Below are positions 1,273-24,808 of a stretch of 64,000 nt of DNA, piece by piece (position 1 is the first letter of the stretch; each line of letters opens with the position of its first letter). A program made the position numbers and the translations under genes. Source of the stretch: Sminthopsis crassicaudata (Eukaryota); assembly GCF_048593235.1 (NCBI RefSeq), contig NC_133621.1:91193148-91257147 (forward strand), written 5' to 3'. The notes under the pieces are model-generated. The model was not told where the DNA came from. It saw only the letters and a program-made list of their open reading frames with translations, and ran no database searches.

Positions 1273-1800
1273 TCACTGCTCCTCAGAGACCTCAGAGCAT
1301 TGGGGTGAAGTAGGGGACATTCTGGCATGGGTACGCTGATGGTTAAGGAGGAAGCGGGCCTCTCGGAAACAGCGCCTGCACTGAGCACACTGGTAAGGTT
1401 TCTTGCCACTATGGATGCGCCGATGGGTGAGCAGATTCTGTTTGAGGCTGAATCGCCGTCCACACTCAGGGCACGGGAAAGGACGCTCACCTGTGTGGAT
1501 GCGTTGGTGGACAGAGAGATTGTGCTGGATGCTGAAGGCCTTCCCACACTCAGGGCAGACATACAAAGCCCTCCCTGCTCCACTCATTCCAGTGTGAGCC
1601 TTATGGTGCCGAACTAGGCTAGACTGCTGAGGGAAGGTCTGACCACACAACAGACATCGATAGGCCTGTTCCTCTGCTGGATGGTGGATAACGAGGCCCT
1701 GATCATCACTGGGACTCTCATCATCTGCCTCAGGAGGCTCTCCTTCTAGGGGGGGCAGGTCCGACATGGGCACTTCCAACAGTTCAAGGGTTCCATTCAT
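1273..1800 (-). CDS. Unnamed C2H2 zinc-finger protein, 175 aa, 4 intact fingers; positional orthologue of mouse AI854703 / human LOC728743
   Basis: ORF contains YRCLLC..HHKAH, YVCPEC..HQRIH, FPCPEC..HRRIH and YQCAQC..HQRTH, with TGERP and SGKKP linkers. A pyrimidine tract plus ccccag acceptor puts the exon start at 1814, 14 nt before the ATG and open in frame. Orthology is from recalled gene order (next to ZNF775). Confidence 0.85.
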   Translation of the reverse strand: MNGTLELLEVPMSDLPPLEGEPPEADDESPSDDQGLVIHHPAEEQAYRCLLCGQTFPQQSSLVRHHKAHTGMSGAGRALYVCPECGKAFSIQHNLSVHQRIHTGERPFPCPECGRRFSLKQNLLTHRRIHSGKKPYQCAQCRRCFREARFLLNHQRTHARMSPTSPQCSEVSEEQ

Positions 1801-3699
1801 TAAATCACCAACCTCTGGGGAGACACAGAGAAAGGGTTTAGAAAATGGAATGGTTCCTCTCCCGACTAGTCCAGACCAGGGAAATTTCCCTGCATATTCC
1901 CTACTAACATTTTACATATGAAAACATATCAGTTAATTCTAGAACAGACTTGATATTGTCTACAACACAGTTGTCGAACTTTGTGATTTTCTAAGTCAGT
2001 GGTCTCACAGGGTTCCTTTTCCTGGTCTAGATTAAGGCCGTCATTTTGCAGGTGAGGAAAGAAAGAACCAGACAGGATGAGTATTGTAGTAATTGCTGTT
2101 GTTGTTGATCTGGGTTTGTGCCTAATGCAGGATAGCATTCATCTCTAGATTCTATTCTTAGAAAGTCTTTCAATTCAAGGACCACTCATGAATCCAGAAG
2201 AGAGATGAAGCATGTTGCCTAGCTTTTGACAGGGAGGTGATGGATGAACTTGGAATGAGTTCACATGAGACCTATATTTTTGGATGGGCAAATGCAGGAA
2301 TTTGTTTTGCTTGACTATGAATATTTCTTGTGCATAGGGTTTTTCCCTTTTTAAAAAACTAAGGATGAGAGGAGGAAAAAGTAAATTTTTATTTGGTTTG
2401 GTTGAAAAATATAAAACTATTTCAATAAATAAACTACAAAAAAAAAAAGAGTTCCTGAAGTATAGCATGGTTAACTGACTTGTCCAAAGTCATAGGGAGA
2501 GTACAATACATTTGTATTAAGTAGAGCTTAAATGCATATCCTCAAGCATCTTGCATAGTGCCCAACACTGCCTGTGGATTGATCGCCTCCAGGCTTCAAG
2601 GCCAAACTCCCTCCATTGCACTACACTATTTGTACAGTAATTCTTCATATTATATCCATAATTAAAGACTCCATTATTACCCTTGAAGATGAAGCAAGGA
2701 TGCCTTGTGTTTCTTAGTACCCTCAATGCTACCAGAAGTGAACATTCATTAGAGGAGTCAATAAATATTTATAGATTAACTCAAATTAATCTTGGGATTC
2801 CTTCATTTATCATTTTAAGTCTCAAAGGCCCTCTTCTCCCACAGGGTATGTACTCTAGTAAAAATATTAATTTTTTTTATTACCATGGGCAGTAGCAAGA
2901 GTGTGGGAATTGAAGTTAAGAAGATTCAAGACCTCAGATGCATTAACTGTACTAGAAAACTCATTTAATCTTGCATGACTCAGTTTCCTCAATTGGGAAT
3001 GGGGTTAACAATAGCATCTACCTCACAGGGCTGTTGTAAGAATTGAATGACTTAATGTATATACAGCACTATATGAATTCTAGCTATTATCACAACAGTT
3101 ATAAAAAAGTCCTTTATACTTCTTTTAGTATTTCATTTTCTTTCCTCCTTCAAGGCAGGCAGGGATTATTTATCCCCATTTTCCAAATAAGGAAACTAAG
3201 CCTTAGGAAAGTTCAATTCGGTAAATTCAATTCAGTAAACACTTATTAAGTGCCTACTGTGTGCTAGGTTCTGGTGATACAAGACAAAAATCACTCCTTC
3301 AAAGTAGAAGATCCAGCTCCGGTCCCAAGCTTTCCCCTATACTCCTGCTCTCCAGCCTTTCCTGGAAGAACAAGCATTCATTATATACCCGACACTACTG
3401 GCCACACTTGCTTCCTTTCCCAAAATTCTGTGATTTGATCTTGAAGGTCAGACTCCAGAAGTTTGGGATTAAGAGTCCTGGATTTTCATCCCCTAGAACC
3501 ACTGCTGTATACTCTTCCCTTCTCCATCTTCCCATGTGTAAAGGGGGGAGAAGGTAGGGAAGCAGAGACGACCTGGGGATATTTGGGAGCATCAAGCAAA
3601 GTCAGCGGGACAGAGACACTGGAGGCCGCCCCAGGAGGGAACCCAAATTTGGGGATTAGATAGCTCCTTTGAAAGGTCCCAAGTCCTTCCGTTGCATCA

Positions 3700-4700
3700 G
3701 TTCCTGCACCAGAGCCCGTTTAGATCTCCCTAGCCTGTCTCCTCCCACCCCAACCCCTACCGCCTAAGTAGGGTCGTCTCTCTCAGCGTTATCCGAGGAA
3801 GAGCTGGTGGTGATTCCTGACTTCTGCCCCCAGCTCCTGTGCCCGGCCCTCTGTCCCAAACTCACAAGTCTGGAATGTGTCCCAGCTCCTCCTCCTGGTT
3901 CCGACCCCACGAGAAGCTGCGCTGCATGCGGGAAATACGGTAACTTTAGGAGCCAGAGCTGGTTCCCACTGCTTCAAGGTAAATTTACAGTAAATACGGT
4001 AAACCTCCAGCTAAGCTTTCCTTTTAAATACAATAGCCCTCCCCCAGCCGCCCTTCAGGTACTGGGGTCTGCTCCGGTTTTGACTCAGAGCTCCGTAGGC
4101 CCGCTGGCCCACCCATCGCACCCCACCCTCAGCAGCAAGCCTCCAGGTTCATGCACAAAAAGGAGGCTGTAGCCGAGCTACTTGCTGCCCTCTCAAGCCC
4201 AGGCCCCATGCACTAGCGCTCTATTCAATAATTACGGTAACCCACCCGCAGCGACCTCAGGCAGCGTTAGATAAATAAGGTAATCTTCCTGCCGCAAAAG
4301 CCCACTCGGCTCTTCAGGGCTACAGGGACTCACCGCGCGACTCTCAGCAAATACGGTAACGCTTCCGCAGTGACAGCCTCAGTCCACCCACCACCTCCTC
4401 AGCGCGCCCGGTAAATACGGTAACTACCGCAGCGGTCCGCGGCTGGAGCAGGGACTTACGTGATTCTGCGGTCTGAGTGCCGAGTCCTGAGCTCTCCCCA
4501 CCACGCACGCCTCCCCAACAGCCCCAACAGCCCCAACAGCTGAGAGGTCTAACTGGCCCAAAAACCTGGCCCGCAGGAGGGAGGAGAGCTGGCGATGGGG
4601 GAGGGGTAACCAGCAACCCCAAGCGGGGGATTACTGGGAGAAACGGAAGGGTCCTCCCTGCCCCGATCTCTGCGCTCCAGAAATCATAGTATTTCGAGCT
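3700..4700 (-). promoter_or_regulatory. CpG island / promoter and non-coding first exon(s) of the unnamed zinc-finger gene
   Basis: Locally CpG-rich. Consensus minus-strand donors GCG|GTGAGT (exon end 4334) and CAC|GTAAGT (exon end 4460). No ATG in the candidate exons. Confidence 0.7.
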
Positions 4701-5854
4701 GAAGAGTCATTTAGCGCATCTTGTTTAACAGATGGAGAAACTGAGGCCATAAAAGTTAGTGACCAGGGTCACACAGAGGAGAAAACAAGTCTTCTGTCTC
4801 AAAATCCAAAACTCTTTATGGTACAAGAGATAGGACCAATAGTCCCCTGGAGGGAGAGCTGGGAACTCCCAAGGTCACAAGGGGCCAAAATAGATTGTGA
4901 AGAAACCTCAGGTTGCGATAACCTAAAATCCTTAACCCTAACAAATTCTCACCTTCAGAGAAATCCTACCATTACCTACTTGTGGGGCACTCAAACCTCT
5001 GCCCACTCAAAGCAGAAAGGATTTTTCCTTTCCATTCTTTTTCAAAATTCCCCTCCCCCACCTCCACATACATATGCATCCAGATTCCTTACCAGCTAGG
5101 TCAAATTCTCCTCTCCATTTTATAAAGCCAGCTCCCTGGTTCACCTCACATCAGGCCAGAATTGAGAGGAATTCAATGAAGGTACCAGATCTGAGCTTTT
5201 AGGATTTACTCACCAGTGACACTGGATTCCCTGCTTGGGGTGAATCCAGAAGGCCTGTCCTTCAGTCTCAGGGCTTTCACCCTTCACTATTCTCTAAAAT
5301 GATCCCTAGACTAGAGGCACAATGCTTCATAAATCTGAACTAGCTTTCCTTTCTTGCATTCAATGTCTTCTTCCCTCCAGCCTAAGGGTCGGGAAAAAAA
5401 AAAGCGATGTCTCTAGTTTCCCAAAAACTAACTTCTTCATCTAAACCTCAACCCTTCACTTATCTTAAAACTTTCTCACTCTCGTCCAATCAATTGCCAA
5501 GAATGTATCCTACAACCACCAAAATTCCAGTTCTCATTTTTTCTCTCTACCCCATAGGTCCCTCCTCTGATAAGTCAGCTTTTGCTTCCTGCCCTTGCTT
5601 CATTAATATTCCCCTCTCTCATGAATACTCAAATAATTCCTTCTCTGCAGGCTCCTTTTTCAGCCTACAAATACACTCCAAAAGGAAATTTTCCCTTGAC
5701 CCCACTATTTTTTTAGCTTCTGCTCCTATCTCTTCTCTTTGCTGTCAAACTCCTAGAAATGAATTTACATTTTTCAGCACTTTGCAGTATGGCTTATAAA
5801 TTGTCTCTTTAAGTCCACTAATGACCTTATTACTGCTAAGGATCTTTCATCTAC

Positions 5855-6376
5855 ATACCTCGTTGTTTGTCCTTCATTCTGAAAGAGAATCATGATATCA
5901 GAAAAGTGATGGCAAGATATTCGAGGAGAGCAGTGCAAAATCACCTACCTCACTTTCTGGGTCCAAAGGCAGGATGATGTAGATCAGGAGAAGGCCCTGG
6001 AGGCAACAGGAGACGTAGTCCTTTTTGAGGGAAGGTCTTCCACTGCCCTCATTTTTAACTGAAGCCACACCCATTTAATGATTTAATCTTGAAATCTTTG
6101 GAGGCAAGTACCTAGTCAAAACAAACTAACAAAAACCTCAATCTAAATAAATAAATAAATATGGGAGGGGAAGACCTTCAGGGTTTCGAGACAAAGCCGG
6201 AATGATTTCTATTTACATTCTGTTTGAGTCAATCAGGACCCAAACAATGACCTCTTGGTAGCCAATGAAAATCAGATTGGTTTTGGTTTTAGGCCTTGTG
6301 CTTAAGAAAGAAATCTGCCCAGTCAATCCCAAAATACCTTGGGAAGGTTCTGAGGTGAAAAAAAAAAAAAAAAAAC
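5855..6376 (+). mobile_element. Old marsupial interspersed retroelement with poly(A) tail (family not certain, WALLSI-like); a second partial copy lies at about 41995-42140
   Basis: Shares sequence with 41995-42140 (caaNNtcacctNcctcacttt...tctgggtccaa...gatcagga...ggccctgga) and ends in an A-run at about 6358-6375. Confidence 0.5.
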
Positions 6377-15170: not shown

Positions 15171-18100
15171 CTACAATATGCCATAAGCATAAGTCTATTC
15201 AGCTCCTTGCTTTTGCCATTTGCTCCTTTGACAGCTGCTTCTCGTTGGCTGTCAGAGGGAAGAGGTATCTACCATCCTCCCAACCTCCTCAACAGAAGTG
15301 ATCCTACCAGCATCCTTGGATGAGAATATGAGAAAGTGGAAGATGAGGATACTCTGAGATACCCAAATTGCTACTGGTAGAAAATCATTCCAAGACATTC
15401 CTAGTCCCAATCCCCCTCACTAACAATCCCAAAACCCAAACTCAAGTCTCCTGAGCAATATTATTCAGTACTTTCTTTTCTGTCCCAGTTCATTTTTGAT
15501 ACAATTCTGTTTTTCCAATCCTCCCTCCTTAAATAGCATGAGGACTTTTATCTTTAGTGAACTCAATATTCAAAAAGGATGCACTCTTAAAAGAGCTTGC
15601 CTAATCCCATCCTGCCAAGTCTCAATGAGTCCCCCACTCTGCTCCATGTCAAAATCACTATGAATGCCAAGTGTTGTACCAGACCTTCCCACTGAATATG
15701 GATGCTTCTGTCCTCTGTTGCCAAGCAGCACTCCTGATGTTGGTTTTCATGGTGACTGGCATCACCACGGCAGCCAACAATTTATAGCACTTCTCTTATT
15801 TTTCTAAAGTACTGGACATCTTAATCCTGTTTTCCATAGATGGTAGATAAGTACAGGGGCTTGTCTTGTAAAAATTAGCTGGGGTGTGGGAAGGGGTAGG
15901 GGAGGTGGAGTGGACCCTTTGACAAATAGCTTAACATCATCTATTCTGCAAAACTTGTCTGATTAAAAAAACAAAACCAAAAAACCTCTAAAATCTCATC
16001 TCCTCCATGAAGCTTGCCTGCTTTGCTAAGAGTCAGTGCTCCTTCTTTGCTCACTACCCCTGGAGCAGACTTCCTTATCAAATATAAAAACATACAATTT
16101 GATATATTTAACCTAGTACTTGGTTGGTTGATTTGTTTGGCAGATACCTTTTCTACTGTCAACACCTATCAGAAAGAATAGTCAGTTAGTCTGGCCTGTA
16201 TTTTCTGAATGAGCCCATATGATTCAAAATAAGGAAGACACTAGTCCCATGGTATTTGGGGCTGGAGAATTGTGTCTAATTTGGAGCACATTTTAAAAAG
16301 GACATTTTTAAAATTGGGCTCTATAGAGTTTGGTGACCAGAATGGCAATGGTCCTTGAAACCATGGGATATACAAGTTCAAGAAACCAAAACACATTGAA
16401 GAGGGAACATAGTCACAACTTTGTTATCTGAAGGTTTGTCATGCAAGAAACAGAAGCAGAGCTGAGAGACATGAATTCTCTGCAACTAGAAGTCTGAGCA
16501 ACCAAGAACAGCAGAAAGGGAATTCATGTGAAGGCAATAAATAACCTCTAAGGTTCCTTCCAATTCCAACAGTCTATAATTCTGTGATTCACTGACTTCC
16601 CAAACATAACTTGGGCATTATGTCCTCATGCCTTTATTTATAGTCCACTCTGTCCAAAACCTATCCATTATTCAAATTCCAGCTCAGGTCTTGCTGCTTA
16701 CATGAACTTCTAGCCCGTATGTATCTAAAACCCCAGGCTGCTTAGCATTTAATTCTATTATTTTCTAAATCAAGAGCATCCCAGTCTTGTCTCCCAGTTA
16801 GACGAAGTAGGAGGCTACCATGACTAATAATCACACGTGGTCATTTTGTGTTTCCAGAAAACCCTTTTCTCTGGTCCTCAATGGAAATAATTACTCTATT
16901 ATTTTCCTCACAGAGAACTTGTGAAGAGAAAATGAAAGACTTTCCTATGAACATTTCCATGGCTGTCCTCTCATATGAGAACCATGCGTGAAGTTTTACT
17001 GAGAATCTGAAAAGTAGGTATGAATAGTTTTGAAGGTAAGGTTCCAAATCTCAAGGAGGAAAAAGCAATACCCTAACCCAGATCAGAGGATTCTGATCAG
17101 GGATGTGATGCTGGAGAATGAGAGGAATATGTTTTCCTTAGTCCCAGAGGTTCTCAACCTTTACTGTATGTGAAGGGTTGTTTTTTTTTTGTTTGTTTGT
17201 TTGTTTGTTTCTGATCACAACTGTATTTTAATATAACTATTTTCTTCTACAATCTATTTTAATGTAGGCATTTATAAACATTATTCCATAGGCTAAGACT
17301 TCCTCCCCTAAATATTTAAGAGTATTTCAAAGGAAAAACATTCCATGTGTACAGCTTGCTAACATGCTCATATCAAGAGATAGAAACGAAGTGTAGGAAC
17401 ACAACTGATCCATTCGGAGGATACTGTGACTAGGTGAATTTCAAGTTAAACAAGGCCTAATTATTCTTAGACATGGAACCAGAAGTACTAGAAGATTGAC
17501 TTTGTCCAGGCAGATCAAAGTAACCAATGGATCAAGAACAACCATGCCCAGCTACCATGACCATTGTGATCGACTTCACCCTTTAAGAAAACAAAAAATT
17601 GTCATTAGAAATGGGTTAATACCTGACTGACAAAACACTTGCTATATTTCAGTGAGGAAAAATTCTTCTTAATCTGTTCTGCTACCACTGCCTCAACCCG
17701 GCATGATGCTAGCTCCCTATATGGAGCACCCTAAGATGCCAATAACGAATCTTTCTCATCCTGGACTGATACCTGTGAGGTTTTAGTAAATAAAGCTACT
17801 TAATAGGACCTAGTGTCTCCAAAACTTTGGTTTTGTCCTTTGTGATGCCTACTTACCGCAGCTCTGGCCACAGTCAGGAGCAGTGAGAACTCACCATGAG
17901 GGGTCACTACATCCTAGACTGACCAGCAGCAAGTGGTCTTCACCAATTCTTGCATAGGTGCTAGCCGCCCATCTGACAAGTACCCATCACTGAAAAGAAC
18001 ATAACTAGATCCTCTCTGAAGTAGATCTGCAATATGCCAAAGTGTTTGGGATTGTGGAATTCTTGGGGCCAGAGGTCAATATGGAAGGTCACATTTTCTC

Positions 18101-19713: not shown

Positions 19714-21398
19714 TTAAGGTTCTTCCTTGATGCTGTGTGCAGCAGCAAGCACCACCTGGCCCCTTGCTCTATGGACACGATGGTGTTTAAGCAAGTGCTG
19801 CTTCTGGCTGAAGCCCTTGCCACAATCAGCACATAGATAAGGCCGCTCGCCTGTGTGGTTCCGCTGGTGCCGAGTCAAGTTGGGCTTTTGGCTGAAGCAA
19901 CGCCCACAATCTGGGCAAGGGTAGGGCCGCTCCCCTGTGTGAATCCGCTGGTGGATGGTGAGCGCAGACCACCAGGTGAAGCTCTTGCCACACTCATTGC
20001 AGATGAACTGACGCTGCTCAGCAGTGCCAGATGAAGGGGCTCCTCTTCCTGCCTGGGACATGCCTACTGGGCCCCGGCCCCAGCGTGGCTCTCCGTCCAG
20101 CAAGACAAGCTCGCTCCCTTGCAGGGCCTGAGAAGCCGGCGGTGGCTGCAGAGGGAAGCCCAAGGCATACTCTGAAGCTGGCATTAAGCCCGACCTCGGT
20201 TCCACACTAGCCACAGCCACCACCATCCGGCCCCGGAGGGCTGCCCCGTGGAGCAGCTCAGCGGCAGCATGGGCCCTCTGGTGGGCTCGCAAGGCTGCCC
20301 GGCTGGGGCAGCTCTCCCCACAGCCAGGGCACAGGGAAGCCTTCTCCCCAACTCGGTGTGTGCGCTGGTGTTTGAGCAGATGCTGCTTCTGACGAAAGCC
20401 CCGGCCGCAATCAGGGCACAGGTGGGGTCGTTCACCCGTGTGGTTACGGAGGTGCCGAGTCAGATTGGGCTTCTGGCTAAAGCGCCGCCCACACTCTGGG
20501 CAAGCATATGGCTGCTCCCCTGTATGGATCCGTTGATGAATGTTCAGTGATGACCACCACGTGAAACTCTTCCCACACTCATTACAGATGAACTGGCGCT
20601 GCTCCCCAGACCCAGTAGCAGAGGCCCGAGCCTTAGCAGGTGGTCCCGGCCTCCACCCTGCACCAGCTTCCACCCAGGGACACCCTGGCAGTTCTCGTGA
20701 TGTTGATGGAGGCCGGCGGGGCTTCCGGGTCACCTTGTCTCTGAGCAGCTTCTGCAGCTCAGCACGGGCCAGCTGACGGTCACGGGCATGGGTCCTCTGG
20801 TGGATGCGCAGGGCAACTTTATGGCGGAAGCGTCGCTCACACTCAGGGCAGGAATGAATTGCAGGGCGGGAGTGTGTCTTCTGGTGTTTGAGCAGATGTT
20901 GCTTCTGGCTAAAGCGCCTCTCGCACTCAGAACAGTGGAAGGGACGTTCACCTGTGTGGTGTCTCTGGTGCCGAACTAAGTTTGGCTTCTGGCTGAAGCT
21001 CTTGCCACATTTGCCGCAGTGATAAGGTTTCTCTCCTGTGTGAGTGCGTTGGTGGATATTGAGTGAAGACCACCAACTAAACCTCTTCCCACAGTCTTGA
21101 CATGTAAAGTGTCCCTCACCTACTGGAAACTGTGGGCCAAGAGGTGCGGGGGCTGCTGTGGACCCACGGCCAGTTGACCCTCCCAACCACTGAGCACTGG
21201 GAATTCGGCCTGGGCCTTGGGCCTCCTCCCAAACTCCTGGGGCTCGAGGCTTCCCCAAAGCCTGGCGAAGTGGATGGCCCAGAGGATGCTGGAAGATATT
21301 CTCCTTGTCCTTCTCTGGCAGAATCGTGGGAGCCTCCAGGGCCTGGGGAAGCCACTCCTGCTTCTCCCATTTGATCTTTACCATGATGCTGCTGTCAC
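19714..21398 (-). CDS. ZNF775: ZNF775 main coding exon (11 C2H2 fingers)
   Basis: Translation carries ZNF775 hallmarks: [34 protein letters not shown]. Acceptor is ttttttTAGCAG|GT with exon start 21398, phase 1. Internal ATG at 21384, stop TAA at 19714. The ORF-track start at 21468 is intronic. Confidence 0.95.
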
Positions 21399-22946
21399 CT
21401 GCTAAAAAAAGGAGATGGACAGAAATGATTCTCAGTAATTGATTCTTGAATAGATAAGAGGAAGGCATGAAGTAGAAAGGAGGGGAAGAATAAAAAGCAT
21501 AAGAATGAGAAAGAAAGATAGCAGAGAAAGACTAGTGAATGAGAGGGGGGAAAGGAGAGAAAACTATGAATGTGAAGGAGAAAATGAGAAAAGAGAAAAA
21601 TGAAAGGAAGATAGAAATAAAGAGATGAGAATGAGAAGGCATGGAGGAATGAAGAAAAGGACAAAAGAGAGGAGAGCATGGAAAGGAAGAATAGAGAGAA
21701 AGGGGAAAGGAGAAAGCTGAAGACTAGAAAGTCAGAAAGAAAAGTGAAATTTGGGCCCTGCATTTGAAACCCTGTACTGCACAGGGAGAGTGGATCTCTT
21801 GCACTGACTGTTGCCTGTTCTACCTCACTGCTCGCTTTATGGGTCTGAGCAGGCCAAAGAGGGTCCTAGAAAGGACACACACACAGACCTTTAAAAAATA
21901 CAGCCCATGCTGGTGGGCCAGGAAAAGGTTTAACAATAACCATGAAAACAAAACCCCATTTCCCAGCAAATTTCCTGTTTGCTTGCTGTCATCACCAGGG
22001 GATATGGGCCAGATTCAGATAGGTTTCATTGTATAACTGTTTTCCAGATGCTATTCCCTTTGTTTTATATCATTTCATAAAGGGCCTCAAGAGGTCCTTC
22101 TTCATTCCTCTAGGTGCTTTTCTGAATTCTTTCTTGGTTTTCAGCTGTATTCTGTGTATACCCCTTTGCATCTGCATAGGTGCAATGCTGTATAGCTGAG
22201 AACTAGGTAGGTAGGGAGACAGGTTTTTGGCAGCCCCATCTCCTGCTGTCAGTGATATACTACTGAGAAGGCCTTCAGGGAACTGGTTTAACACCTTTTT
22301 AAAGAATCATTGTTTTTGGAATAAAACTGGCAATGCAGAACTGGAAATTGAGGCAGTTGGTGGGTCATACATTCCCTAACATTGGCTATGTTCCCGCAGA
22401 GATGAGGTTCACTTTTCAGAATGACAGAGAGGATTCCTATTTCATGGTAGGGTTCTATTGAAGGACATCTAAGGTTTCTTCCAACCCTGACACTCTGGGA
22501 ATTTATTTCATGATTCTGCTGTGGTAACTCCCCCATAAAGTTTTATTATTCTCGTCCTCCAAATAAGTAAAAAATGAGATACAGGGGGTCGAAGTGATTT
22601 GCTCAAAGTCTCATGGTTGTTAATGGAAATGCTATGACTAGAGTCAAACCTCTCCAGATGAATTTGCCCAGGTGCCTATATCAAATACAGGACATAGATT
22701 CTACTGAAAACCTAAAACATAATAATAGAAAATGGAAGAAGAGTTTTTAAAAATGAGTTTAAAAAAAAATTCTATCATTCCCCACCCTCTGGGTAAGGAA
22801 AGATCCAGGTAATATAGCAAGCATCTAGCTGAAAGAAGCTAAGAGGTGAATGTAGATTTAAGGAACAGGGTGACTAAGAGAAACAATGAGAGAAATGAAT
22901 TTGGGTAGGTGCCAAAGTACTAGTCTTTGCTTATTCCTTTACTTAC

Positions 22947-23820: not shown

Positions 23821-24808
23821 TTTTTTTTTTTTTTTTAATTTATTTTTTATTTTTTTTATTCATTTTTCCAAATTATCCCCTCCCTCCCTCCACTCCCTCC
23901 CCCCGATGACAGGTAATCCCATACATTTTACATGTGTTACAATATAACCTAGATACAACATATGTGTGTAAATACCTTTTTCTTGTTGCATATTAATTAT
24001 TAGCTTCCGAAGGTATAAGTAACCTGGGTAGATAGACAGTAGTGCTAACAATTTACATTCGCTTCCCAGTGTTCCTTCTCTGGGTATAGCTATTTCTGTC
24101 CATCATTGATCAACTGGAAGTGAGTTGGATCTTCTTTATGTTGAAGATTTCCACTTCCATCAGAATACATCCTCATACAGTATTGTTGTTGAAGTGTATA
24201 GTGATCTCCTGGTTCTGCTCATTTCACTCAGCAACAGTTGATGTAAGTCTCTCCAAGCCTCTCTGTATTCCTCCTGCTGGCCATTTCTTACAGAGCAATA
24301 ATATTCCATAACCTTCATATACCATAATTTACCCAACCATTCTCCAACTGATGGACATTCATTCAACTTCCAGTTTCTAGCTACAACAAAAAGGGCTGCC
24401 ACAAACATTTTGGCACATTCATACACATTCTAGAATACTATATGCAGTTCAGAATGCCATAGTATTTTTAGTATTTCTCTTTAGTATTTCTTTGGGATAT
24501 AATCCCAATAACAGCAATGCTGGGTCAAAGGGTATGCACAGTTTGACAACTTTTAGGGCATAGTTCCAAATTGCTCTCCAGAATGTTTGGATTCTTTCAC
24601 AACTCCACCAACAATGCATCAGTGTCCCAGTTTTCCCACATCCCCTCCAACATTCATCATTATTTGTTCCTGTCATTTTAGCCAATCTGACAGGTGTGTA
24701 GTGGTATCTCAGAGTTGTCTTAATTTGCATTTCTCTGATCAGTAGTGATTTGGAACACTCTTTCATATGAGTGGAAATAGTTTCAATTTCATCATCTGAG
24801 AATTGTCT
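23821..24808 (-). mobile_element. Young 5'-truncated L1 (ORF2 C-terminus, 3' UTR, poly(A)) with target-site duplication
   Basis: ORF track gives KECSKSLLIREMQIKTTLRYHYTP...CWRGCGKTGTLMHCWW and KMFVAALFVVARNW (L1 ORF2p C-terminus). Poly(T) from 23821. TSD TGAACATGTTTTTC(TTT) at 23806 and 24809. Confidence 0.95.

Follow-up and report, generated by a model that had tools for sequence, protein, structure and literature searches.

At CHD4, conserved clusters of ZNF410 sites confer specificity for a single gene (bioRxiv 10.1101/2020.08.31.274324). Two other described DNA words come close to the one considered below and involve Myb-type proteins: nearly all type-3 proximal sequence elements (PSEs) start with TYACC-N-TAA (PMC3499247 Fig. 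S4), their 5' half being held by the Myb repeats of SNAP190 and their 3' half read by SNAP50 (PMC9652321), and for the Myb-like DMTF1/DMP1 the site is CCCG(G/T)ATGT (PMC3161675, citing Hirai and Sherr 1996). Here, we describe an array of an 11-letter word in the dunnart Sminthopsis crassicaudata, within a window of 64 kb (64,000 nucleotides of contig NC_133621.1, forward-strand positions 91,193,148 to 91,257,147). The array lies in a CpG island at the 5' end of a minus-strand gene, a homologue of LOC728743/AI854703 belonging to the C2H2 ZNF genes and having four fingers. It is a real, very old and selectively maintained motif array of a known general kind, probably a homotypic site cluster, and, judging from its sequence, it probably works as a cis-regulatory module in which one sequence-specific DNA-binding protein is offered five strong sites and one or two weaker ones.

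The word is strongly enriched in the island. Five exact copies of TACGGTAA are found on the plus strand, at 3936, 3995, 4233, 4352 and 4416, for 0.25 expected from shuffling, and 0 of 100 shuffles gave five; these are the same five copies, in one orientation, that a first-pass annotation of the window had listed and, as it had also reported, the 8-mer occurs nowhere else in the 64 kb, being confined to 3936-4423. The two variants that it had added, TACAGTAA at 3986 and TAAGGTAA at 4276, are both present; the former is the echo TTTACTGTA of the copy designated c6 (Table 1), and its description as CpG-decay-like agrees with the devil, which retains the CpG at this place (ACCGCA in gene sense). 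Allowing up to two mismatches to the 12-mer AAATACGGTAAC, an extra copy is gained at 4273, whereas TTACCGTATTT with at most one mismatch yields six matches against 0.55 expected, all on the minus strand and all within the island. The extended pattern GGTAAC-N2-4-CCGCAG, formerly noticed in three copies, is found three times (4236, 4355 and 4419) for an expectation of 0.00.

Distances between copies are irregular, namely 64, 76, 43, 204, 34 and 59 across all seven dunnart copies and 64, 119, 238 and 59 among the five exact ones. Tandem Repeats Finder (TRF), at score 30, returns no regular tandem array, only a 9-bp stutter of 2.1 units at 4409-4427 and an unrelated threefold CCCCAACAG; the earlier statement that the array is not a simple tandem repeat is thus borne out. 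The surroundings of the copies, which had been called dissimilar, are not wholly so: an upstream flank of about 10 nt is common to them, with a G-rich GCTGSGG 2-6 bases upstream in six of the seven dunnart copies, and some also share CTGAGG downstream. Every copy is contained in the span of about 520 bp between the donor of exon 1a and exon 1b.

On the strand of the gene the word reads (K)TTACCGTATTT, and a weak echo, A-Y-Y-G, comes after it. In a position table built from 21 copies of four species, each of the positions 2-12 (TTACCGTATTT) is occupied by a single base in 81-100% of the copies. Position 1 is G in 12, T in 6 and A in 3 of the 21, and position 13 is A in 12, C in 4, G in 3 and T in 2; position 14 is a pyrimidine in all 21 copies and position 15 in 19, position 16 being mostly G. 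The full site can be written as KTTACCGTATTT, then A-Y-Y-G, often with GCTGCGG-N2-4 ahead of it. It looks like TTACCGTA followed, nine bases further, by a weaker echo, TTTACYG, and the 9-bp stutters at c1 and c6 repeat this pattern of TTACCGTA plus echo. The core, TAC-S-GTA, is nearly palindromic, and in tenrec c7 a flip of the central C to G (TACGGTA) retains the palindromic half-sites.

The copies are fixed in position among three marsupials, dunnart, devil (L001) and Dromiciops (L002), whose islands align along their whole length and in which the copies share order and positions. In devil and in Dromiciops alike, TTACCGTA occurs in exact form five times, always on the gene strand, for about 0.1 expected, with no further match outside the array in 16.5 kb of either locus; the spacings of these exact copies are 66, 118, 234 and 59 in devil and 82, 119, 245 and 59 in Dromiciops. 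The copies c1, c4 and c7 are identical in all three marsupials, c3 is retained in Dromiciops and has two changes in devil, and the sequence of c5 differs among them. Dunnart and Dromiciops agree at 72 of 72 motif columns (six copies), compared with 82% for the remaining aligned columns of the island and 70-75% for the introns; were the motif columns like the remainder of the island, such an outcome would have a probability of 0.82^72, about 6e-7. The comparison with devil is uninformative in this respect, its identity being 86% everywhere, introns included.

When the dunnart locus is compared by BLAST with those of the eutherians goat, tenrec and hamster, the coding exon alone aligns. At 1.3-2.3 kb upstream of the zinc-finger exon, and on the gene strand, goat (L006) carries four copies of the word, at 17914, 17971, 18218 and 18400 (0.11 expected), and tenrec (L005) three copies with at most one mismatch (0.05 expected), besides two weaker ones; these tests of counts against expectation are independent of alignment. 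In an alignment of six species (A2: dunnart, devil, Dromiciops, goat, tenrec and hamster), c1, c2 and c7 are positional orthologues, as supported by shared landmarks: GTCACTGCGG ahead of c2, which is common to marsupials, goat and hamster, GCAGCGCAG behind c7, and an invariant TGTGAGT donor. The counterparts of c1 are ATTACCGTATTT in goat, AGCCGTATTT in tenrec and a decayed GTTACTGTATTA in hamster; those of c2 are GCTACCGTATTT in both goat and tenrec and a decayed GTGCATATTT in hamster; c7 is the same in goat as in marsupials, with GTTACGGTATTT in tenrec and TTAACTGTGTTT in hamster. In the same alignment, c4 stands opposite TCTACCTTATTT of tenrec and decayed sequence of goat and hamster, c3 has no eutherian counterpart, and c6 has no clear one. 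Identity with goat over c1, c2 and c7 reaches 34/36 against about 47% in the other aligned columns, and over all motif columns 74% against 40-47% elsewhere, figures that are raised by the part the motifs themselves play in anchoring the alignment. Some copies are lineage-specific, c6 being marsupial and a copy preceded by GCGACGCAG eutherian, which is the turnover usual for site clusters.

A lack of conservation in marsupials and eutherians, named in the first-pass annotation as the outcome that would speak against a functional motif, is therefore not what is found, the motifs being conserved in both. Set against their surroundings, the marsupial copies together with those of goat and tenrec indicate an array at least as old as the therian ancestor, with selection acting on it in most of the sampled lineages. 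The core word has been under purifying selection since that ancestor, its flanks having drifted.

Hamster (L003 9271-9850) departs from the others in a manner linked to CpG. Both 5' donors and the overall block are kept, and the CpG is gone from each of the four orthologous copies through CpG-to-TpG/CpA transitions, accompanied by more changes (GTTACTGTATTA, GTGCATATTT, TTATCACATTT and TTAACTGTGTTT); about 13 of the 48 letters of these copies are changed, versus 3 in goat. The ratio of observed to expected CpG in the hamster island, 0.50, is the lowest among the six species. This decay is a lineage-specific loss of constraint.

In Anolis, the one lizard considered, the array is absent within 10 kb of the gene. 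Matches to the position weight matrix (PWM) occurring 5-6 kb downstream of the gene were rejected as an array, for they sit within interspersed repeats. As a side observation, an interspersed and internally palindromic repeat at L004 16225-16330 of Anolis starts with TACCGTATTTCCCCAAAAATAAGAG, and its first 13-17 letters equal marsupial c7 with its flank (TACCGTATTTCCC) and nearly equal the third tenrec copy (TACCTTATTTCCCCAA). Repeat termini of this type resemble the ends of a family of miniature inverted-repeat transposable elements in other vertebrates. The match could be due to chance, or could hint at a transposon-end or transposase-binding word.

Two of the traits by which homotypic clusters are recognised are found at this locus: at least three motif copies lie within a few hundred base pairs, above chance, in dunnart, goat and tenrec, and the motif instances are better conserved than their surroundings. 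Among the hypotheses put forward initially, a homotypic site for one factor is thus the best-supported class. The cluster would lie in the unmethylated 5' CpG island of the gene, past the exon-1a donor and ahead of exon 1b; there it would either be the exon-1b promoter or act as an intronic element proximal to the promoter. Its copies would have arisen by local duplication of a unit of 40-80 bp before the split between marsupials and placentals, because they share flanks and a single orientation. Multivalent binding by one factor may then provide high occupancy and specificity at this single locus, and the CpG in each site may render binding, or the survival of the site, contingent on the island being unmethylated; in the hamster lineage, constraint would have been lost and, with it, the CpG of every copy. 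Candidate readers of the word are proteins of the Myb/SANT type or with another helix-turn-helix (SNAPC4-like, DMTF1-like), or a C2H2 protein.

Several points weigh against a homotypic cluster of binding sites. Binding by a protein, an effect on transcription and a role of methylation are what we infer from the pattern described above; the marsupial depth amounts to three species, two of them dasyurids; and, as already said, the anchoring role of the motifs inflates their identity between marsupials and eutherians. A strictly single orientation over 160 million years (My) is not required of clusters of binding sites, and is equally expected of an element read in RNA. String searches of the literature with 8-mers and 10-mers yielded primers, U6-promoter vectors and primers for the ends of maize Ac/Ds, with no transcription factor motif among them, and we know of no protein that binds this word.

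Table 1. Copies of the word, host-gene features and CpG island in the dunnart window (sequences in gene sense)
Feature	Position	Strand	Sequence and remarks
Copy c1	4413-4424	-	GTTACCGTATTT, then echo ACCG; about 35 nt past the exon-1a donor
Copy c2	4349-4360	-	GTTACCGTATTT; GTCACTGCGG just before
Copy c3	4273-4284	-	ATTACCTTATTT; degenerate, without CpG
Copy c4	4230-4241	-	GTTACCGTAATT; CGCTGCGG just before
Copy c5	4026-4037	-	GCTATTGTATTT; weak, doubtful member; repeat family D1 and flank comparison
Copy c6	3983-4003	-	TTTACCGTATTT (3992-4003) and overlapping 9-bp echo TTTACTGTA
Copy c7	3933-3944	-	GTTACCGTATTT; immediately upstream of exon 1b
Exon 1a donor	4454-4460	-	Exon end C 4460, intron from 4459, CAC/GTAAGT
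Exon 1b donor	3860-3866	-	Exon end T 3866, intron from 3865, CTT/GTGAGT
Zinc-finger coding exon	1273-1814	-	175-aa protein; acceptor AG at 1815-1816
CpG island	3600-4700		Contains exon 1a, array and exon 1b

The host gene has an open reading frame at 1273-1800 that encodes 175 amino acids (aa) with four C2H2 fingers, and this frame is identical to the C-terminus of the Sminthopsis crassicaudata model P0121, whose upstream coding exons fall at 6074-5949 and about 4700-4460 of the window. Orthologues bear the names 'zinc finger protein LOC728743 homolog' or 'expressed sequence AI854703'. In the dunnart model P0121 and the devil model P0126, exon 1a is spliced to the zinc-finger exon (...AESQ/VGDLM), and its donor is kept in the three marsupials and in hamster. 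Exon 1b starts right behind c7, in a region with CAG/ at 3922-3924 and ATG at 3925-3927; it is present, likewise placed right behind c7, in goat gene models and in a brushtail-possum model, and its donor TGTGAGT, about 75 nt after c7, is invariant across the six species aligned. The island is a moderate one, with a GC content of about 0.58 and an observed/expected CpG ratio of 0.60 overall, its 200-bp bins ranging from 0.56 to 0.65 in GC and from 0.4 to 0.9 in CpG ratio. The neighbouring genes ZNF775 and REPIN1 are also on the minus strand. The literature on LOC728743/AI854703 consists of expression or methylation lists, which do not mention the array, and the locus is absent from the text of the Motif-Cluster paper.

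Some further observations concern the same region. A consensus donor, GCG/GTGAGT, is located 15 nt past c2 (4328-4335, minus strand), where devil and Dromiciops have GCGGAGAG; it is a potential extra 5' splice site specific to the dunnart. An E2F-like TTTCCCGC overlaps c7 (3925-3935, minus strand) in dunnart and devil, and is not found in Dromiciops (TTTCTGGC) or goat. The threefold tandem of CCCCAACAG is perfect, lies at 4513-4540 inside exon 1a and is read CWGCWGCWG in P0121; devil and Dromiciops are about 8-9 bp shorter there, which looks like one unit fewer and would be a species-level change of length in a putative N-terminal extension. In the tenrec protein P0010 (L005 10001-10600), finger 4 is without its first Cys and both His, and finger 5 without its first Cys and last His; the tenrec gene may be decaying though the array upstream of it is kept.

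An alternative that directly accounts for the strict orientation, and which is nonetheless unlikely, has the word read in RNA. In transcripts beginning with exon 1a, the whole array would make up the short intron that separates 1a from 1b, and its copies would consist of a branch-point-like TTAC and a pyrimidine-rich TATTT, then AG, with c7 as the true 3' splice-site region of exon 1b and the other copies as decoys or sites for splicing regulators that set the usage of 1a and 1b. The copies are indeed in sense orientation wherever they are kept, which is in five species, and both flanking donors are conserved. A distance of 9-20 nt separates c7 from the CAG/ downstream of it in marsupials and from GAG/ or CAG/ in goat, for which the gene model of Capra ibex shows an internal exon near L006 18421-18480. 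However, branch points and pyrimidine tracts are degenerate, and 11 letters including a CpG are not normally invariant for 160 My; moreover, UUACCGUA has little complementarity to the U2/U12 branch-site recognition sequences. The near-palindromic core and the C/G flip tolerated in tenrec better suit a reader of double-stranded DNA, and the loss in hamster by CpG transitions points to a process linked to DNA methylation.

A narrower form of the homotypic-cluster reading, to which we would give a rather low probability, regards the array as a dedicated landing pad with few or no genomic counterparts, used by an uncharacterised Myb/SANT-like or transposase-derived protein, or by SNAPc outside snRNA (small nuclear RNA) genes. 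Such a factor would have about one target locus, as in the case of ZNF410/CHD4, and both the factor and its use would have been lost in muroid rodents.

That the copies are half-PSEs recruiting SNAPc, be it as an snRNA-type promoter or as a SNAPc landing pad on an mRNA gene, appears quite improbable in spite of a literal resemblance. TTACCGTA(A) is identical letter for letter to the 5' half of the PSEs of human U6-1 and U6-7, TTACCGTA agrees with the general 5' half TYACC-N-TAA at 8 of 8 letters, the half so matched is the part bound by the Myb repeats of SNAP190 (PMC9652321), and marsupial c4 runs on as ...TTGAATAG, near the tail of the U6-8 PSE. Yet c4 is the only copy with A at position 9, every other one having T; the A-rich 3' half with the G-T contacted by SNAP50 is missing, positions 13-20 (A-Y-Y-G...) varying between orthologous copies; and there are 5-7 copies versus the single PSE at -55, with no TATA at the proper distance. 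The sole octamer of the window is at 24723, none being in or near the island, where no ZNF143 site is found either with up to three mismatches, and neither an Rfam family nor a tRNA turns up in 2500-6000. Besides, with so large a number of motifs on record, a chance identity with one of them over eight letters is not improbable.

Doubtful to a like degree is the idea that the sites are read by the neighbouring ZNF775 or REPIN1, or by the gene's own protein, which would amount to cross- or autoregulation within the cluster of genes. The site together with its GCTGCGG-type flank measures 16-22 bp, a length that suits a multi-finger protein, and the thrice-repeated three-finger cassette of ZNF775 (19714-21468) predicts GGAGAA, resembling the GGAGAG/GCAGAA just 5' of several eutherian copies; the resemblance is weak, however, and the conserved core is not covered. 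PWMs derived from the finger code for the three proteins reach a z of about 2, which is the chance maximum over some 60 positions, and do not predict the core, although the recognition code, made by hand, is crude and this is not strong evidence against the three proteins. The specific suggestion of ZNF775 in the first-pass annotation thus finds no support, in contrast to the class of site that it had proposed. Autoregulation is further disfavoured by the fate of protein and sites in three lineages: the DNA-contact residues of hamster are the same as those of goat, yet the hamster sites are decayed; the predicted tenrec protein has lost zinc ligands of finger 4, yet the sites are kept; and marsupials have lost finger 5 while the word is unchanged.

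It is very unlikely that the array is a functionless relic, that is, a set of old minisatellite units decaying slowly in an unmethylated island. Minisatellite units were also considered in the first-pass annotation and, as regards origin, the description holds, since flanks and orientation are common to the copies, pointing to descent by duplication, and 9-bp stutters are seen at c1 and c6. It does not hold for the present state of the array: between marsupials and eutherians the flanks have diverged past recognition by BLAST and the word is retained, within marsupials the motif columns stand at 72/72 versus 82%, copy number and position are fixed across the three marsupials, and the remaining CpGs of the same island are less well kept.

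Least probable of all is a series of U1-binding, donor-like sites (ACG/GTAAC) in a plus-strand antisense transcript, as also hypothesised at first: each plus-strand copy does offer six contiguous base pairs to U1 (-1 to +4), but C or A stands at +5 in every copy and G in none, whatever the species, 6 nt of the would-be exon (AAATAC) are conserved as well, with conservation to -8 where donors are free to vary, and no plus-strand gene is evident, the identified neighbours ZNF775 and REPIN1 being on the minus strand too. The remaining early hypothesis, of RFX or forkhead sites, does not fit, for an RFX X-box is at odds with the variable position 1, where the G of the half-site GTNRCC (G in 12/21) is replaced by A, T or C in many conserved copies, and with the lack of a second, inverted RGYAAC half and leaves CGTATTT unaccounted for, a forkhead TRTTTRY is at odds with the base after TATTT, which is any of the four, and with the invariant TTACCG outside such a site, and the two together do not account for the invariant CCGTATTT.

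A homotypic cluster thus being the preferred reading, its interest lies in that such clusters, when deeply conserved and made of an unassigned word, are rare and lend themselves to experiment, the natural loss in a rodent supplying a built-in comparison. Should the word be rare genome-wide, the array would be a second case of 'one factor, one locus' after ZNF410/CHD4, and would open a first way into the function of a gene which, in mammals, passes for an unnamed locus or a pseudogene; should it be common, the array would be an ordinary promoter module.

Among known systems, a minisatellite has in common with the array the flanks and orientation shared by its units and the 9-bp stutters at two copies, and differs in that TRF finds no regular period, the copy number does not change among marsupials and the core word alone has been kept for 160 My. 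The DMTF1 site (PMC3161675), compared letter by letter, has 7 of its 9 letters in common with ACCGTATTT, namely CCGTAT and the terminal T; the copies all depart from it at positions 1 (A for C) and 8 (T for G), the TTA conserved 5' of the core falls outside it, and DMTF1 exists in rodents, where the array has decayed. As for the snRNA PSE, the first eight letters of the word (TTACCGTA) are those of the Myb-bound 5' half in U6-1 and U6-7 (PMC3499247 Fig. S4), whereas the array has neither the 3' half nor a solitary element at -55, and lacks a TATA or 3' box, a distal enhancer and a small RNA gene. ZNF410/CHD4 (10.1101/2020.08.31.274324; 10.1101/2024.02.24.581901) differs in that the factor is known and its binding has been demonstrated there, while the dunnart array has a putative reader, a single orientation and a CpG in each copy. 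The likeness to it consists in several copies of a word of 11-12 bp within a few hundred base pairs of one gene, in clusters that are deeply conserved and are thought to give one factor a high and locus-restricted occupancy.

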